A model generated the notes under the pieces. That model made no database searches. It saw only the letters and a list, made by a program, of their open reading frames with translations, and was not told where the DNA came from. From contig RQSC01000663.1 in the NCBI GenBank assembly GCA_013416795.1, positions 24,714 to 49,920 on the forward strand: 25,207 bases of DNA, in the 5' to 3' direction. A program made the translations under genes and the position numbers. Of the stretch, positions 2,824-24,587 are shown in pieces. Numbering within the stretch: the stretch's first letter is position 1; every line of letters begins with the position of its first letter. This DNA comes from Prasinococcaceae sp. CCMP 1430. Lineage: Eukaryota > Plantae > Prasinodermophyta.

Positions 2824-3218
2824 TCGTCTGTGCGCCCACCCATCCATCCACGCACGCATCGCCGGAGCGCCACCCTCCCTTCCCCCAACACGCCCCCATA
2901 ACTAATTATGACCAACCGACAGGCGATCGCGCGTCTCCTCGCCAGCTTCTCGAGCAAGCGGGAGAGCGAGGCAGTGACGCTCGCGCCCGCGCCCCCGCCC
3001 AGCGTGTGCGCCACTCGTGACCATCGGCGCGCCCGCGCTTGGCCGCCCGCCAGCACCGTTGAGAGTGCCGGATATGCGTCAATATGCACGGCACGCGCTC
3101 GCCGCCTGTGCTCGTCGCCGCGCCCCTCGCCCGCCCCACAACTGCCGATCGCCCCCTGCTGCGGCACGAAAAGCGTCGGCGGCGGCGCCGCCGGCGGCCC
3201 GCCGCCCGCGGCCGGTAA

Positions 3219-3290
3219 NNNNNNNNNNNNNNNNNNNNNNNNNNNNNNNNNNNNNNNNNNNNNNNNNNNNNNNNNNNNNNNNNNNNNNNN
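3219..3290. other. Assembly gap (72 N) in the 5' region of ORC2
   Basis: N run. It prevents assignment of the ORC2 start codon. Confidence 0.99.
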
Positions 3291-5509
3291 CGGCGGCGGG
3301 CGCCAAGGCTGCGAGCGTGCGCGCGGCTGCGCCAGCGGCCGCAGCCGCGGCCAGCGTCGTCAAGCGCGGTAGGAGCAACGAGGGCCGTGAGCTGCGCGCG
3401 CTCGGCAGGGCCGTGCGTGCACAGGCAGCCAAGGTCTCCAAGGCGAGGACCGGCGCCGCGGCCGCCGGCGCCGACCCGCTGCTGCAGGAGAGCGTCGAGC
3501 AGCTCAAGGAGCGCTTCCGCGCCACGTTGGGCAGGGATGCGTCCTCAAGCAATAAGGGCTGGCTTGTCATGAAGATCCGGTTGGAAGAGAAGAAGGCCGA
3601 CAAGGAGAAGGCCGCCGCGTCGCCCTCGCCGGCGAAGGCTGGGCGCTCGCCCGCAGCGCGATCGTCGCCGCCGCAGCGGCAGCAGCAGCAGCGTTCACCA
3701 GCGGCTGCGCGGTCACCCACGCACAACCGCGCATCAGCCGGACGGAAGCGCGGGGCGTGCAGCCAGGCAGACGCCGGGGCTTCCGCACGCGCGCGCAAGA
3801 GACTCAACCTCGGCAGCGCGGACGGCATCGCGGGGCGCGATGAGGTAGAAAGCGAGGGCGACGAGGCCTCCGACGAGCAGCTCGAGGATGCACGGGCGGA
3901 CGACGACGGCAGCGGAGGGAGGGACGCCGATGTGGGCGACGACGACTTCTTCAACCGCGATGCGTGTGCAGATGCGAGCCCGGGCGCGGGCGCGGGTACG
4001 AGTGGCTATGTCGCAGCGCCTGTGGCGCCCACCGCAGTCGCGCGGCCGGCGGTCAACGGCGACGCGATCCGCGCGGCGATGCGCGCGGCGATGGGGCGTT
4101 CGATGGGAGGCGGCCTGACCATCGCGGCCGCCGCGCCCGCGGAGCCGAACGAGAGTGCTGGCAGGGGCGTGGACGCAAGCGCGATGGAAAGGGGCACCGG
4201 CACGGCGTGTGCACCTGGCACCGACGAAGCCGAACAGGAGGAGGAGGAGGAGGAGGGTGGGAATGGCCGCGCGTACATCGAAGCCACGCGCAAGCAGGGC
4301 GCGTCCGGCAGCACGGCCAAGGGAAGCAAGGGCGCCAAGGGCGCCAAGGGCGCCGCGCGCACCAAGACGAACAACCGCGCCGCGAGCGCCCCACTGAATG
4401 AGTCGTTGCTGGCGGACGACGCGGCGGTGGCAGCAGCGCTCGCGACGCTTCCCGACAAGCACGCGGCCGCGCGCGCAGAGCTTTTCGAGGTGTACGAGCA
4501 CGAGTCGGCGCAATGGGCACTGCGGCTGCGCGCAGGGAGCTCGCTGCTCTTCCACGGTTTCGGCTCCAAGCGCAAGCTTCTGGATGAGTTCGTCGCGCGC
4601 TCGTGCTCTGACGGCAGCGTGCTGGAAGTCGACGGCTTCGAGCAGGCGCTCACGGCGCGTGACGTGCTGCGCGCGGCCGCCACGATCGCGCGCGAGCACG
4701 CGGCGGCGGTGGCCAACGCCAACGCCGCCACGGGCTCGGCTGTAGACGCCGAGGGCGTGGCCGTGGGCGCGGCGATTAGTGGGATGTCCAATGCGGAGCT
4801 CTGCGCGGTGGTGCGCGCCGCCATGCATCTGCCGGGAGTCGATCCGCGCGCCGAGGAGAGCGGGTCCTCGGTGCCCATGCCTCCCCTGTACCTGGTGGTG
4901 CACTCGATCGACGGCCCCAGCCTGCGGAGCGCCGAGGCGCAAGCGCAGTTGGCCGAACTTGCCGCATGCACGCACGTGCGCGTGGTGGCCAGTGTCGACC
5001 ACCTGAATGCCGCGCTGCTGTGGGATCGCGAGGCGCTCGGGCGCTTTCGCTGGAGCTGGATCGAGGCGCCCACGTGGGCTCCATATACCTCCGAGGCGCG
5101 CAGCTTCGCGCCGCTGGTGGCGCCCCGCGCCGAGGGTCGCCGCGCGCAGGGTGCACTGCAGGTGCTGCAGTCGCTCACGCCCAACGCGCGGGGCATCTTC
5201 CGCATGCTCATCGACCGCTGCAACGCGCAGGCCCAGGCGGCCGCAGCGGCAGGCGGCCGCGGCGGCGGCGCCATTGGCATCAGCTTCCACGCGCTCTACG
5301 AGGCCTGCCGCGAGCGCTTCCTGTGCTCGAGCCAGGCCACGCTCAAGAGTGTGCTCACCGAGTTCGCCGACCACGAGCTGGTGCGCGAACGGCGCACAGC
5401 AGGCACGGGCGAGCGCACCGGGGGCGAGCGCGGCGGCGGTGACCTCATCCAGGTGGCGTTGCCCAAGGCGGCGCTCAGCTCGGTGCTTGAGGCCATGGAC
5501 GCTGCCTGA
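3291..5509 (+). CDS. ORC2: Origin recognition complex subunit 2 (start uncertain, upstream of or within the gap)
   Basis: The C-terminal half has the ORC2 blocks QWALRLRAGSSLLFHGFGSKRKLLDEF, LYLVVHSIDGPSLR, VRVVASVDHLNAALLWD, FRWSWIEAPTWAPYTSE, VLQSLTPNARGIFRML and the winged-helix block ISFHALYEACRERFLCSSQATLKSVLTEFADHELV. The N-terminus is long and low-complexity. Stop TGA at 5507-5509. Confidence 0.93.
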
Positions 5510-5669: not shown

Positions 5670-8600
5670 CTACGTCGCGCTCTCTGCGCCGCCAGCTTTG
5701 TCACCCACGCCGATGCTGCCCGCGCCGATAGCGTCACTGGGCCCTTCGCACGAGCCGTACAGCGCGCGCTCATACCCCTCGATCTCCGAGGCGGAGAGGC
5801 CGTTGAAAGCAACCGACTCGGGGGCGAGAGCACGCAGGCCGTCGTGGAGCGGCCCGCGGCTCCGCTCAGCGTACCAGCCGACGCGGTCGGGCGCTGACCT
5901 CATCGGCGTCAGCGCGGCCTTCAGTGCGCTGCCGCCATGAAAGCGCTCGCGCCCCTGATCGTCTCGCGAGTCGGTGGGAGTCACATGGGCGTCCTTCTGC
6001 ATGCACCTTGAGAGCGCGATATCTGCCGCCATGTTTTCGTTGCATTGGCCCTCCGCGACGCGCTCGCCTTCGCCGCGCCATCCCGCCGTTGCATCAGCAA
6101 ACTTCTCTAAGCCCGCGGAGTTGAAGAGGTACATGGTGTTCAGCACTGTGAGGGCGCCGGTGCTGGAGTTGGCCAAGGGGACGCCCTCGGCGTCGCGCTT
6201 GTTCCGATGCAAAGCGTCCTCAAACATCACGCGCCCTGTGTAGAGCGCACGCTGCTCGTCGCCCGCCTTGCTCTCAAGCTGTGCGATCATCTTGCGGACA
6301 TTCTCGACGACCACGTAGGAGTTGTCAGGCATGAAAAGGAAGTGGGTGAAGGCCTTCGTGTGGCCGCGGCAATTCAGAATGCGCAGCACTTCAAACAGCT
6401 CCTTTGCGTGGCCGAACTCGCGCCCCCGCACCAAGAATGGCTGCAGCGCCGCCTCGGCCTCAGCGTACGCGGGTCGTTCCGCCTTGAATGCATCGGTGGC
6501 ATATTGGCCCACGAAGAGCACGCCACTGCAGCGCTTGCCCCATGTGCGCCAGGAGCGCGTCGCCAAGCCCGACCGGATGCCTTCGACGTTCGTCGAGATA
6601 ACACACAGCAGCTTGATGGATGCACGCGCGGCATCCTCGCCATGGCCACGCACTACCCTCAGGTGGCGCATCGCGAGATCGTCTGTGGTCCCGTTCCAGC
6701 TCGGATAGCTGACAACGTCGCCCTGGGCGACGCCTTTGTGTTCATGCGCCTCCGGCAGGCCCTCGCCACCATAAGGGGCCACAAAGTTCGCAGAGCACGT
6801 GTCGACCTCGGTTGCCCATGCGGCCGTATTGCCGAGCCTTGCGTCGTCCCACCTAGCGTCCCCTTGCATATGGATAGCGCCCCCAGGTTTGTCAATGTTG
6901 CAGCACAGCAGACGCTCCCGGGTTGTGAATCCCTCGGCGCGCTCCACCGCCGCGGCCGCTGCCGCTGGCTCCAGTGACTTGAGAGGCACCGGGTCGAGCT
7001 GCCACCCACAGCCGCACTGGGTACCAATCCACTGGGACTTGGACGCGTTGGACCCTGCAGGTGTATGGATGACGAAACCGGAGCGGTCGAGGTATTGCTG
7101 CCTCGTTCGCTCGTTGCCGATTGCGAACGCTTCACCAGGGGCGAGGCCAGAGAGCTCGATCTCCCCGCTATCTTTCTGTGGCAAACTGAAGATCTCCCAT
7201 ACGCGACGCTCAGCAGCAGCGCGGCGGCGTTGCACCTGAGGCTGCCAAGCGTGGTGCATGCTTTCGAGACGAGGTGCGCCTTCGCGCCTGTAGTAATGAA
7301 AGACCACGTTCACCGACGGGATGTAGAAATCAAAACCATGGCTGTACAAACGGAGTGCCCGCGCTGGTTCCTCGCCCATGAAAACGTACGGCATGTACTT
7401 GTCGTAAGGCACCGCACGCTCACTCTCGCCGAGGCCAAAGCTGAGTCCCGCTGCCCAGAATCCCGTGAGCTCCGGCCTGCCGACCCAGGGATTCTCATCG
7501 CCTGCCCCCTTGTTCGCCAGGCTCCCACCGTTCAGAAACAGCCTGCAGATGCGTGGCACCATCTTGTAGTGGGAGATGCCATCCAGCCAGGGCTTTTCCA
7601 TTCTGTCGTCTGCCATCGGGTACGCCGTGAGGATGCCGCGCGGGTTCCCGGCCAGCTTCCAATTGTCGATGAGGAGCGAGTCCCAGTTCTGCGCGAAGAG
7701 GGAATGGGAATCCACCTGGAGGAAAAAAGTCTCGTCTTCTAGGAGCTGCTGCGAGTCATACCGTGTCACGCACACGCCCTCCGAATCCTCCGCGCGCTGC
7801 CTGCTGACGCGCACTTGTGACCGACGGCAATTGCTCTCCCCGACCTTGTTGCAATACATGTCCAGGCAATCGAAATCGAACGGGACGGCGAACTGATCAC
7901 CCGATGCTGTCTGCTGCACAATGCCGATGAACACGCGCGACGCGTTCGCGGCGTTCTTGAAAGCGCTCTCAAGGGTGCGTGGGCACTCGCGATCCCGGAA
8001 TGATGCGAGCGCCATGAAGACAGACGATGACGACGTCGAGTGGTTGAGGTGTAAGCGATCCCAAAACGGGCCGTTCCGCGTCAGATGGCGATTTCTATCC
8101 GCCTCGGTCACTGTCTCGAAGGGGTGTCCCATCGTCTTGTTCGTAGCATTTTTGTCGCTGTCGGCGCCATGCTCCGGCTTGGACTCGCCGTGCGCCGGCT
8201 TGGACTCCCCTCGCGCCACGGCGTCCTGCTCGCGCAGCCTTGAGAGGCGCTCTCGCTCTCGCTCCGTGCAGCTCGAGGGCACGGGCATCTGCGGGTTGTG
8301 CCGAAGCAATCCCATGTTGCAACCGTCCTGCTTCGGCCCAAGCTTTCTGAGCGCACTCGTGGCGGCCTCGCGCAGCATCGGCAGCGCGTGTGCGGCCACA
8401 CGCGTGGGCCAGGATTCGATGACCGGGTCCGGCTGGTGTTTTTCGCCGGTAGCGGTCGCCACGCCGCCTGTGGTGGCTTTGTCCCCTTGGTCGCGCTCCC
8501 CTAGGAGCCGCGCGCTGGCGCTGCCGGTCGACCCGGCGTCCACCCGCTGAGACAGCAGCGAAGGCCGCAGCAGCGCGTCGACCGACTCGACCGACGTCTC

Positions 8601-9131
8601 TTCGAGCTCTTGCTCGAGCTCCTCCCACCACGAAAGGCCTTGCGTTTTGGCACCGGGCGCCAGCCCCCCGCGCACTCCGCCGCGCGGAGACTGCCTGTGC
8701 TCCCACACGACGAGAGGCGCGAGCACCGTGAGCGCCATAAGACCGATGGCGATGACGGTGAGTAGCGAGGGCGCACCGGCCCCAGCTGCAGTCGCGGCAT
8801 GGAGCGGCAGCGCCGCCGCCCCCGACGCGGATCCGCGCTCGCGGCGCATGTCGTCGACTCCTTTCCCCACACCGCCCCCTACTATCTCTAGAGCCCCGCC
8901 CTCGGGCGCGACAGGCGCGACCGCGCTCGCGCGGGGCGGGGCGCGCGCAGCGTCCTGTGGCGCGGCAGCCGGCGCCGCGCCGTCCTCCAGCGCGCTGTCA
9001 ACACCCGCGCGGCGGCGCGGCGGCCGCCGCAATTCGATCTGATATGCGCCGATGCGATTTGATGGAGGTCTTCCTGTGTGTGGAGACGAGACCGAGCGGC
9101 CCAATGCGATTTGATATGGATGCGAGCTCAT
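5670..9131 (-). CDS. Type II membrane glycosyltransferase fusion: GT60 (Gnt1/Gnt2-like GlcNAc transferase) plus C-terminal GT31 (C1GALT1-like) domain, ~1153 aa
   Basis: Probable ATG at 9131 (MSSHPYQ). One hydrophobic helix LLTVIAIGLMALTVLAPLVVW (~8703-8765). GT60 motifs VFMALASFRDREC, FLQVDSHSLF, ILTAYP, FWAAGLSFG, VPYD..YVFMGEE and RLYSHGFDFYIP..VVFHYY (~7289-8027). GT31-like motifs KLLCVIST, TWGKRC, HFLFMPDNSYVVVENVRKMI, LYTGR, ADIALSRC and DSRDDQGRERFH (~5757-6618). Confidence 0.85.
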   Translation of the reverse strand: MSSHPYQIALGRSVSSPHTGRPPSNRIGAYQIELRRPPRRRAGVDSALEDGAAPAAAPQDAARAPPRASAVAPVAPEGGALEIVGGGVGKGVDDMRRERGSASGAAALPLHAATAAGAGAPSLLTVIAIGLMALTVLAPLVVWEHRQSPRGGVRGGLAPGAKTQGLSWWEELEQELEETSVESVDALLRPSLLSQRVDAGSTGSASARLLGERDQGDKATTGGVATATGEKHQPDPVIESWPTRVAAHALPMLREAATSALRKLGPKQDGCNMGLLRHNPQMPVPSSCTERERERLSRLREQDAVARGESKPAHGESKPEHGADSDKNATNKTMGHPFETVTEADRNRHLTRNGPFWDRLHLNHSTSSSSVFMALASFRDRECPRTLESAFKNAANASRVFIGIVQQTASGDQFAVPFDFDCLDMYCNKVGESNCRRSQVRVSRQRAEDSEGVCVTRYDSQQLLEDETFFLQVDSHSLFAQNWDSLLIDNWKLAGNPRGILTAYPMADDRMEKPWLDGISHYKMVPRICRLFLNGGSLANKGAGDENPWVGRPELTGFWAAGLSFGLGESERAVPYDKYMPYVFMGEEPARALRLYSHGFDFYIPSVNVVFHYYRREGAPRLESMHHAWQPQVQRRRAAAERRVWEIFSLPQKDSGEIELSGLAPGEAFAIGNERTRQQYLDRSGFVIHTPAGSNASKSQWIGTQCGCGWQLDPVPLKSLEPAAAAAAVERAEGFTTRERLLCCNIDKPGGAIHMQGDARWDDARLGNTAAWATEVDTCSANFVAPYGGEGLPEAHEHKGVAQGDVVSYPSWNGTTDDLAMRHLRVVRGHGEDAARASIKLLCVISTNVEGIRSGLATRSWRTWGKRCSGVLFVGQYATDAFKAERPAYAEAEAALQPFLVRGREFGHAKELFEVLRILNCRGHTKAFTHFLFMPDNSYVVVENVRKMIAQLESKAGDEQRALYTGRVMFEDALHRNKRDAEGVPLANSSTGALTVLNTMYLFNSAGLEKFADATAGWRGEGERVAEGQCNENMAADIALSRCMQKDAHVTPTDSRDDQGRERFHGGSALKAALTPMRSAPDRVGWYAERSRGPLHDGLRALAPESVAFNGLSASEIEGYERALYGSCEGPSDAIGAGSIGVGDKAGGAESAT

Positions 9132-9469
9132 GTCATGTTGGTTGATGGGGGTCCGCGGGTGGTGTGTTGAGCATGCATACGACGGCCGGCGCGCTCTCCG
9201 ACCCCTCCGTGCGGTGGGTGCACGTCGAGGTGGGGAGCGGGCTGCCACGGCGGAGGGGCAGTGGCGCGCGCGCGCGGGCGAGCGCCACTCGCGCTCCCTC
9301 GCCCGCGTCGGCGCTGCGAGTGGCGGCGCCCCGCGCGCGCGCGCGTGCGCGTCCCAGCCAGCCAGGGCGCGCCATTGATGCAAGGCGGAGGTCGCGACGC
9401 GCGAGCCGCTGCCAGTGCTCACGCAGCTGAGCTCGAGCGCCCACAGCGCACCCCACGGTGGCGACGGGC

Positions 9470-11404
9470 ATGCACTGCGAGGGTGCGAACGGCGGGGAGA
9501 GCGATGCCGGCGGCGGGGGCGATGGCACAACAACTGGGTACCACGTAGAGTCAGCGGCGCAGGCGCCGAACATAGCAGAGGCCGCAGCGCATGGCGCGAC
9601 TGGACACCAACACGCAGAGTCTGGGGCGCGGGCGCCGAACATAGGACAGGCCGTGACGCGAGAGCGAGGCGGTCGCGTTGCCGCGTCTCTAGTCGCGTCG
9701 GGAGCGTGGTTCCGTCGCTGGGCGCGCCTGCAACGGCGGCGCTGGGGCAGTGACGACGCGTGGCACCACGTCGCACACGCAGCGCTCGGTGGGGTGGGCG
9801 GGGCGCTCTCCGGTCTCATGGCTGCCGGATTCTTCGAGGCGGCCGACGCCCTCGAGGGTGTGCGACGCAGGTGGGTGCAGTCGGCCAGCTGGGCGTTTTG
9901 GATCGCCTTGCCACTAGGCGCCGTGGCGATACTCGCGGCGACCCGGTGCTGCTTTGACGGCGCTGCGGGCTCGGGCATACCGCTGTTGATGGCAGAGCTC
10001 CTAAGCGCTGCGCCGCGGGGCGAGAACGTCCGCAAACGCGCCTTGTCGCCTTGGGTGGCCGCCGGCAAGGTCGGCATGACTCTGCTCGGGCAGCTGGTAG
10101 GTCTTAGCATCGGCCGCGAGGGGCCAACCGTTCAAGCAGCTGCGACGATCTGCTTCAGCGTGCTGGAGGCCGTTTGGTGGCTGGCGGAAAAGGGCCCAAG
10201 GTGGACACAGACTCTGCTTGAGGGCTGGAGAGAGTGGATGCGGGATAAGGGCCGCGCAGACGAACACGCCCGGCTTGCCATGCTCGCGGGCGGCGCTGCT
10301 GGCATAGCAGGCGCCTTCAATACCCCCCTCGGAGGCGTGTTGTTCGCGATCGAGGAGATGGGCCCAGCGTTCTACGGGAGGGCTACGGGAAAAATGTACT
10401 TCATTATAGTAGCCGTCTCAACTGCGTGCGCGACGTGGGTGTCCGGGTCCTACAGCTGGTATACCGGCGCCGTCTTCTCCGGTACCGTCGCGTCGAATGG
10501 CCAATTCGCGGTGCGCCGCGTCGCGGCACGCGCTGCCGCTCGCGCCACGCCGTAGCTCGTGCGCTGACGCCACTGGCATTTGCTTGCGGCCTTCACGCAG
10601 TACATCACGATAATCGTCGGAGTCTTCTGTGGCCTCGCCGGTGGCCTTTGGAGTAGCGCTCTACTCCTCGGCATGGACGTGCGTGCTGCTCTTAGGTGCC
10701 CCTACCTCATTGCACTTGCCTGCGGTGCCGGTATTGTGCTCACCGGATTCTGGGGGCAAGGACAGACGTATGGCTCGGGTGAGGCGGAGTCGGCGGCCAT
10801 CATCGTGCCGCAGTCATTGGCGGGTACAGATGTGGTCAATCCATCGACGTCTTTCGGTCCCCTGAAAATGATCGCGACTGCTTTGTCTTACTGGGCCGGT
10901 GTTCCTGGTGGCCTCTTTGCGCCGACAATTTCTGCCGGGGCTGGGTGGGGACGTCTTCTATTCCGGTGGATCCTTGGCCCGCTGGGCGTCGCGCAGGACG
11001 CCGAACCAGTGGTGGCTCTATACGCCGCGGCGGCATTCTTTGCGGCAGTGACGCAGAGCCCTCTCACGTCCGTGGCCATCGTGCAAGGCCTTATCACAGA
11101 CCGGCGCGATATCATTCCTGGCCTCCTCATGGCAGTCCTGATTGCCTGGACGCTCAGCCGAGCCCTGTGCCCGGAACCCGTCTACGCTGCGCTCTCGCTC
11201 GCTGCGGGTTCGGCGTGCGTGCCACCAGAAAATTACCAGCGGTCGCTGCGTGCTCTTCGGCGGCGCCAGGCCGAGGCAGCCGATGGTGTAGCGAACAATA
11301 GTCACGATGCAGTGAGCTCCGCAGCCGGCGAATGCGAGCTGGACGAAGCTTCCCACTTACCTACGGACATTGCTCGCCGGCTGGGCTCTTTCGTTACGTC
11401 GTGA
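9470..11404 (+). CDS. CLC family Cl-/H+ antiporter, prokaryote-type without CBS domains; exons 9470..10510 and 10601..11404 (~614 aa)
   Basis: CLC signatures GSGIP, GKVG..IGREGPTVQ, GIAGAFNTPLGGVLFAIEE, GGLFAPTISAG, QSPLTSV and a terminal PEPVY. First in-frame ATG at 9470 (the track's 9458 start is GTG). Confidence 0.93.
10511..10600 (+). other. Spliceosomal intron in CLC gene (90 nt, phase 0)
   Basis: GTGCGC donor, GCTGAC at 10563-10568, and CACGCAG acceptor. It contains the in-frame stop of ORF 9458..10555; removal joins NGQFA to YITIIVGVFCGLAGG. Confidence 0.92.
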
Positions 11405-24011: not shown

Positions 24012-24587
24012 NNNNNNNNNNNNNNNNNNNNNNNNNNNNNNNNNNNNNNNNNNNNNNNNNNNNNNNNNNNNNNNNNNNNNNNNNNNNNNNNNNNNNNNNN
24101 NNNNNNNNNNNNNNNNNNNNNNNNNNNNNNNNNNNNNNNNNNNNNNNNNNNNNNNNNNNNNNNNNNNNNNNNNNNNNNNNNNNNNNNNNNNNNNNNNNNN
24201 NNNNNNNNNNNNNNNNNNNNNNNNNNNNNNNNNNNNNNNNNNNNNNNNNNNNNNNNNNNNNNNNNNNNNNNNNNNNNNNNNNNNNNNNNNNNNNNNNNNN
24301 NNNNNNNNNNNNNNNNNNNNNNNNNNNNNNNNNNNNNNNNNNNNNNNNNNNNNNNNNNNNNNNNNNNNNNNNNNNNNNNNNNNNNNNNNNNNNNNNNNNN
24401 NNNNNNNNNNNNNNNNNNNNNNNNNNNNNNNNNNNNNNNNNNNNNNNNNNNNNNNNNNNNNNNNNNNNNNNNNNNNNNNNNNNNNNNNNNNNNNNNNNNN
24501 NNNNNNNNNNNNNNNNNNNNNNNNNNNNNNNNNNNNNNNNNNNNNNNNNNNNNNNNNNNNNNNNNNNNNNNNNNNNNNNNNNNNNNN
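24012..24587. other. Assembly gap (576 N) after a poly-C run
   Basis: N run beginning after C x11-12. Confidence 0.99.

Follow-up and report, generated by a model that had tools for sequence, protein, structure and literature searches.

Family GT60 enzymes start the mucin-type O-glycans of protists and have been described without a targeting domain. The characterised membrane-bound members transfer alpha-linked N-acetylglucosamine (GlcNAc) onto Ser/Thr in the Golgi (PMC8724618, PMC3769586). GT60 and GT27 are sister families (PMC7185993, PMC8724618) in which a DxH motif takes the place of DxD (PMC7185993), and the C-terminal lectin domain carried by the related GT27 enzymes is normally missing from GT60 enzymes (PMC8724618). 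Glycosyltransferase folds in non-catalytic service are known from Cosmc, a paralogue of C1GalT1 that lacks DxD and serves as scaffold or chaperone (PMC7185993, PMC9065035), and from the extra GT-A domain of B3GLCT, which binds neither uridine diphosphate (UDP) nor Mn2+ and is essential for acceptor binding (PMC13597200). GT60 genes have previously been recorded in prasinophytes (PMC3797821). Here, we analysed a minus-strand gene within a 25,207-nt stretch of contig RQSC01000663.1 from the prasinodermophyte Prasinococcaceae sp. CCMP 1430 (hereafter the window). The gene encodes a GT60 domain followed by a domain related to the GT31 galactosyltransferase C1GalT1 (T-synthase). A first-pass annotation of the window had read the product as a single chain that both initiates and extends an O-glycan. 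In our analysis the residues for binding the sugar donor have been lost from the second domain, which is probably non-catalytic.

A GT60 domain followed by a C1GalT1-like domain

The GT60 domain matched PF11397 at 183.9 bits, against a cut-off of 21, and covered profile positions 1-345 of 352. In addition to the DSH motif (an instance of DxH), the GEE at residues 586-588 and His612 likewise did not vary across seven aligned GT60 domains (coordinates in Table 1; residues are numbered throughout from a 1153-aa model with M at 9131). Comparison with the 56%-identical orthologue P0002 gave a nonsynonymous substitution rate (dN) of 0.20 for this domain and a ratio of nonsynonymous to synonymous rates (omega) of 0.12. 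No PDB sequence was matched by the GT60 domain. Judged by its sequence, the domain is intact and nothing suggests inactivity. The first-pass annotation had described a transmembrane (TM) anchor, a stem, a GT60 domain with an intact DSH motif and a Cys-containing linker, and all of these were confirmed by hydropathy, the PF11397 match and the orthologue alignment.

The short cytoplasmic tail, the one anchor and the long C-terminal part point to a type II topology, which would place the catalytic part in the lumen. A homologous anchor is found at L001, the locus of P0002 (tblastn E 1.8e-10), and in a more distant orthologue, P0172; hence, the anchor is common to three lineages. In Gnt2/pp-alphaGlcNAcT2 of Dictyostelium and OGNT2 of Trypanosoma cruzi, PF11397 with DxH is likewise combined with a type II anchor and lumenal catalysis (PMC8724618, PMC3769586). 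The position of the anchor, N-terminal to the GT60 domain, fits this Golgi subgroup as opposed to the cytoplasmic Gnt1, a placement predicted from sequence. Unlike the described GT60 enzymes, which have no C-terminal accessory domain (PMC8724618), the window protein continues with a linker of ~150 residues and a GT31-derived domain of ~290 residues.

The assignment of this C-terminal domain came from distant sequence matches and a structural model. A phmmer search against PDB sequences returned Drosophila C1GalT1 (7q4i) as the sole match, with E 1.4e-7 over two collinear stretches. No Pfam or NCBIfam GT31 profile matched the domain even at E<=10, PF02434 and PF01762 included, an absence that the first-pass annotation had counted beforehand against its own assignment, and the C-terminal 354 aa retrieved no protein in a word-index search. 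When a profile built from the window domain and its orthologue was run exhaustively with HMMER over 1.84 billion representatives, 232 proteins were identified at E<=1e-3, among which only the orthologue and one fragment were close. In the derived alignment A3 (79 sequences: 77 domain-spanning matches, the window domain and its orthologue), 58 sequences match PF02434, the Fringe-like family in which Pfam places C1GalT1, and a match to PF01762 is seen for 22. GT31 clusters were likewise returned by a language-model feature search.

An AlphaFold model based on A3 had a predicted local distance difference test score (pLDDT) of 79.6 and a predicted template modelling score (pTM) of 0.81; confidence depended on the 79-sequence alignment, since two sequences gave a pLDDT of only 31. 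This model matched 7q4i with a Foldseek E of 7e-15 and a VIA Z of 27.6 (root-mean-square deviation 2.5 Å over 255 residues), whereas other GT31 structures (B3GalT5, CHSY3/CHPF, B3GNT2, B3GalT6 and Manic Fringe) scored Z 17-19.5. On the model, the C-terminal domain is a C1GalT1-like GT31 fold, and this part of the first-pass annotation was borne out. The domain profile also matched P0024, a metagenomic protein of 1067 aa with three tandem GT31 (Fringe-like) domains.

The former donor site of the C-terminal domain

In Drosophila C1GalT1 (DmC1GalT1), Asp181 and Asp183, both in the DxD motif, coordinate Mn2+ together with His324 (PMC9065035). Asp182 contacts the ribose, Lys158 and Glu150 the uracil, and Tyr325 and Arg152 the pyrophosphate, while a Gly-rich loop faces the donor (PMC9065035). 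The catalytic base is Asp255, in the xED motif, and Tyr218, Ser220, Trp300 and Tyr304 hold the N-acetylgalactosamine (GalNAc)-peptide (PMC9065035). Residue equivalences between DmC1GalT1 and the window domain agreed in three alignments. Like C1GalT1, its best match in both sequence and fold, the window domain keeps two conserved disulfide pairs, the catalytic Asp and the equivalents of Trp300 and Tyr218; Cys843, Cys868, Cys1030, Cys1043, TWGxRC, VEN and Gly966 are all present. Unlike C1GalT1, it has replacements at the DxD, the Gly-rich loop, the xED Glu, the C-terminal His (C-His), Tyr325, the uracil Lys and the Cys-Cys pair, and it lacks a Pfam GT31 match.

These replacements affect positions that are well conserved among the 77 homologues, and they vary from one relative to the next. 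The catalytic Asp position (D1037) is D in 76/77 homologues. The Glu beside it is E in 60/77, but A in the window, P in a strain variant, and S or A elsewhere. The Tyr325 equivalent, Y in 43/77, is G in the window and N or G in the other lineages. For Lys158, the homologues have K in 67/77, compared with H in the window, K in the strain variant, E in P0002 and Q in P0172. The Gly-rich loop reads L-S-x-M and G-A-x-G in the other lineages. The P0172 domain is also degenerate, with SDA at the DxD, A-D at the xED and Asp for the C-His. Two same-species variants were seen, MAAD to MVPD before the catalytic Asp (6021-6029, minus strand) and H908 to K at the Lys158 equivalent (about 6408, minus strand), and this polymorphism falls exactly on former active-site positions.

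We compared ten donor/metal hallmark positions with 68 other positions, all at least 55% conserved in GT31. The window domain keeps 1/10 donor positions but 38/68 of the others (Fisher p 0.014), and P0002 keeps 1/10 and 43/68, respectively (p 0.002). The two proteins agree with each other at only 2/10 donor positions compared with 48/68 others (p 0.003). In addition, five core residues are all present in 68/77 GT31 homologues and never fewer than three occur together, whereas the window domain and P0002 each have two. Because the donor-position losses differ among orthologues and strains, this pattern bears the signature, at the sequence level, of a donor site released from constraint, not one rebuilt for a new donor. 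The earlier proposal of glycan extension with beta-1,3-linked galactose (Gal) by the second domain is unsupported, as the residues that bind Mn2+ and UDP have been replaced, and differently in each orthologue.

Several points weigh against an inactive accessory domain. D1037, the Tyr218 and Trp300 equivalents and a DxRDxxGRERFH loop are kept in both the window protein and P0002, and the retained base and acceptor-side residues could mean residual chemistry. GT-A enzymes can act without DxD or metal, as in GT14 and bacterial GT6 (PMC7185993), and in P0002 two of the former metal positions are occupied by Arg and Lys. Because GT31 homologues supplied the alignment behind the model, the fold and sequence matches partly depend on each other. 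In P0172 much of the acceptor side is gone as well, making a sugar-binding version of the accessory role less likely. Some of these points would suit a protein with both domains active, in which one chain starts with alpha-GlcNAc and extends with beta-1,3-Gal through a metal-independent or altered GT31 donor site. That the fold is nearest to C1GalT1 also fits such an enzyme, and the pairing makes biochemical sense, since a related protein described below (P0070) combines GT60 with a fully intact GT31 domain. We nevertheless consider it unlikely that both domains are active, given that 9/10 donor/metal positions are lost and vary among orthologues and strains as under relaxed constraint, that the losses extend to the Gly loop and the uracil-binding Lys, that GT31 profiles in Pfam fail to match, and that dN stands at 2.3 times the GT60 value.

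The domain has nonetheless been retained. Its frame is open in three lineages, and it is 51% identical to its orthologue with a synonymous rate (dS) >1 and an omega of about 0.40, an overestimate if dS is saturated. Faster evolution than in GT60 (omega 0.40 compared with 0.12), the lost catalytic motifs and an identity of only 23% in P0172 could also be expected of a functionless, decaying relic of a formerly bifunctional enzyme. We regard a relic as improbable, because ~300 codons have stayed open in all three lineages despite dS >1, omega is well below 1, and the fold-defining Cys residues, TWGxRC, VEN and the Trp are preserved in a domain that can be modelled with confidence.

Spread of the fusion and proposed function

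The first-pass annotation had suggested a survey of the fusion elsewhere, and the GT60 plus GT31-like architecture proved to be conserved in three lineages, represented in marine (Tara) metagenomes and in the window's own species. The window's cluster has 17 member sequences. P0002 (1012 aa) has 7 members and the same architecture, with 56% identity overall, and P0172 has 19 members, with 45% identity in GT60 and 23% in the C-terminal domain (pairwise E 2e-13). The GC content of the fusion loci is 0.68-0.70. A protein of 1189 aa that is 95-99% identical to the window protein shares its architecture, and a EukProt entry is 100% identical over residues 334-1153. Since the architecture recurs in two further lineages, the fusion is, on this comparative evidence, real and under purifying selection.

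GC-rich DNA yields many long spurious ORFs (open reading frames), and adjacent GT60 and GT31-like genes or products might have been read as one. Such an artefact is very improbable here, as the frame is continuous in three lineages through a linker with an omega of 0.31, and public annotation spans both domains. In agreement, the frame and hydropathy of the window ORF revealed no stop, second anchor or signal sequence ahead of the GT31-like domain. The two domains are, from the sequence, encoded by one gene as one predicted polypeptide.

A different arrangement was found in P0070 (1909 aa; L010:3001-8730, a Tara metagenome scaffold with GC 0.69), which combines a signal peptide with two PF11397 domains (E 1e-132), ShK modules and a GT31 domain at the C-terminus. 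Its GT31 motifs are all intact (GDD, SGGSGY, SEDV, CC and FHY), making P0070 a candidate for a true single-chain 'initiate and extend' O-glycan enzyme. The activity that the first-pass annotation had assigned to the window protein is unsupported for that protein but fits P0070. In a quick maximum-likelihood tree, the three dead domains clustered (Shimodaira–Hasegawa-like approximate likelihood ratio test 80; 100 for the window domain and P0002), and with the tree left free the P0070 GT31 domain fell among stand-alone enzymes, apart from them. A tree with the four GT60-linked GT31 domains constrained to one clade had a log-likelihood (lnL) better by 17.8 (approximately unbiased test, p-AU 0.77); these GT31 trees call for caution, as the dead domains sit on long branches. 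A single origin of the GT60-linked GT31 domains is therefore compatible with the data, and given the better score of the constrained tree an independent origin of the P0070 domain is likewise no more than a possibility.

We propose, as the most probable account and one somewhat more likely than not, that the window protein is an active polypeptide alpha-N-acetylhexosamine (HexNAc) transferase with a catalytically dead, GT31-derived accessory domain. It would be a secretory-pathway protein with type II membrane topology, encoded by one gene, whose lumenal GT60 domain adds alpha-GlcNAc or another HexNAc to Ser/Thr, and possibly hydroxyproline, of secreted or wall proteins. The C-terminal domain would descend from a C1GalT1-type GT31 galactosyltransferase, have lost sugar transfer along with its Mn2+- and UDP-sugar-binding residues, and have been kept as a non-catalytic accessory module. 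Its preferred role would be to dock, for the GT60 domain, a (glyco)protein that is substrate or product of the latter, given that the equivalents of the base Asp, Trp300 and Tyr218 survive. Alternatively, it may serve as a built-in folding or oligomerisation scaffold in the manner of Cosmc, and a purely structural role is also conceivable because the acceptor side has decayed further in P0172. Conceivable, if rather doubtful, is an ancestry in which a single-chain initiate-then-extend enzyme, still active-looking in P0070, was common to both types and the Prasinoderma-type lineage turned the second domain into a non-catalytic glycopeptide- or substrate-docking module steering GT60. If true, a docking module made from a dead glycosyltransferase would have arisen independently, as a convergent analogue of the lectin domain in animal GalNAc-transferases.

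The proposed accessory domain has partial parallels in other systems. Like Cosmc (C1GALT1C1), it would be a C1GalT1-derived GT-A fold that lost DxD and was retained for a non-catalytic role. In contrast, Cosmc is a protein in its own right, serves an active GT31 enzyme and has also lost its xED, whereas the domain in the window is fused to GT60 and keeps the xED Asp. A specific kinship to Cosmc was unsupported, as the only PDB sequence match was C1GalT1 and the tree grouped the domain with other GT60-linked domains; loss of DxD was most likely independent of that in Cosmc. B3GLCT likewise joins an active and a dead GT-A domain in one chain. There, both belong to one family and the dead one is N-terminal, while in the window protein GT60 and GT31 are combined and the dead one is C-terminal. 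The ricin-type lectin domain of animal GT27 enzymes is also a non-catalytic module on an initiator of mucin-type O-glycans, at the same C-terminal position. It is unrelated to the algal domain in fold and origin, and sugar binding by the latter is hypothetical.

A GT60 initiator to which a pseudoenzyme domain of GT31 origin has been fused appears to be a new form. Overall, the first-pass interpretation was partly supported. No description of such a fusion was found in the literature searched, although the protein is already public as an unnamed database entry, and the supplements of the Prasinoderma genome paper contain no GT60, GT31 or GT27 entries as text. The appended domain of dead-C1GalT1 type sets this GT60 protein apart from the described ones and is conserved in a deep-branching marine green picoalgal lineage. 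It would offer a naturally occurring example of a glycosyltransferase turned pseudoenzyme within a fusion protein, and together with the active-looking P0070 the window protein forms a matched pair for studying how such domains change role. It also cautions against deducing glycan structure from domain names alone.

Gene model, feature coordinates and neighbouring genes

The first-pass gene model (5670-9131) was correct in its single uninterrupted frame, but its start probably lies at M95 (8849). The minus-strand frame is open across 5670-9776 (1368 codons) in the ORF listing. Three observations favour M95 over 9131. First, gene calls on same-species metagenome contigs are 1059 aa long and begin at M95. 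Second, the strain variant P0001 has an in-frame insertion of 36 residues in a low-complexity stretch upstream of M95 (window 8850-9131, minus strand). Third, in two more distant orthologues the protein begins just before the anchor; the N-terminus of P0172, MAGAGGLPLHS, matches window residues 103-112 and is followed by the TM segment. M95 is, on these sequence comparisons, probably the conserved start, and the stretch 8850-9131 may be 5′ untranslated region instead of coding sequence.

Table 1. Coordinates of the features discussed (window positions; residues numbered from M at 9131)
Feature	Positions	Strand	Basis and remarks
Whole ORF, earlier model	5670..9131	-	ATG at 9131, stop 5670-5672; 1153 aa + stop, no interruption
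Probable true start M95 and 26-residue cytoplasmic tail	8772..8849	-	Metagenome gene calls, orthologue anchors, upstream indel
Single TM anchor, residues 121-143	8703..8771	-	Kyte-Doolittle mean up to 2.56 over 19 residues; sole such segment
Stem, residues 144-369	8025..8702	-	Weakly conserved: 45% identity to orthologue, omega 0.37
GT60 catalytic domain PF11397, residues 370-683	7083..8024	-	E 7.6e-54; 75% identity to orthologue, omega 0.12
DSH (DxH) metal-binding motif, residues 474-476	7704..7712	-	D and H invariant in seven aligned GT60 domains
Linker, residues 684-835	6627..7082	-	Cys pairs; 50% identity to orthologue, omega 0.31
C1GalT1-like GT31-fold domain, residues 836-1128, probably non-catalytic	5748..6626	-	Sequence homology, fold match, lost donor site
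DxD position, P-D-N	6321..6329	-	Aligned to DDD181-183; second and third D in 73/77 and 76/77 homologues; orthologues RAD, SDA
Gly-rich loop position, L-N-T-M-Y for G-G-x-G-Y	6129..6143	-	G in 65, 76 and 68 of 77 homologues
xED position, A-D	6021..6026	-	Base Asp (D1037, Asp255 equivalent) kept, Glu lost
C-His position, F-N-G for F-H-Y	5799..5807	-	H in 73/77 homologues; orthologues K and D

The linker matched no known family, with no hit in a Pfam scan. Its Cys706, Cys708, Cys743 and Cys744 are also present in the orthologue. An in-frame intron was considered for this stretch and ruled out, because its conservation and omega (Table 1) mark it as coding. Intron content differs between species, the window gene being uninterrupted where the L001 orthologue is interrupted. 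At L001, the TM anchor lies on a separate upstream exon (7216-8001). A GTGCGT...CCTAG interval (about 7770-8000) ends exactly at the start of the main ORF; therefore, the first 'M' of that ORF would really be the Val of VDAL. Another frame change lies between about 7410 and 7720. The L001 exons were compared by reference and tblastn only, as separate pieces.

On the 3′ side, the gene converges with an ORC2 homologue (3017-5509, plus strand; PF04084 E 1e-56 plus an ORC2 winged-helix domain), with ~160 bp between the stops. On the 5′ side, it diverges from a ClC chloride-channel fragment (9458-10555, plus strand; PF00654 E 4e-28). Neither neighbour has an obvious functional link to the GT60-GT31 gene. 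The GC content of the window is 0.60-0.74 outside runs of N; a value of 69.8% has been published for the Prasinoderma coloniale genome (PMC7455551). These runs, which are assembly gaps, lie at 424-1226, 3219-3290, 21132 and 24012-24587, and the one at 3219-3290 falls in the N-terminal region of the ORC2 gene.

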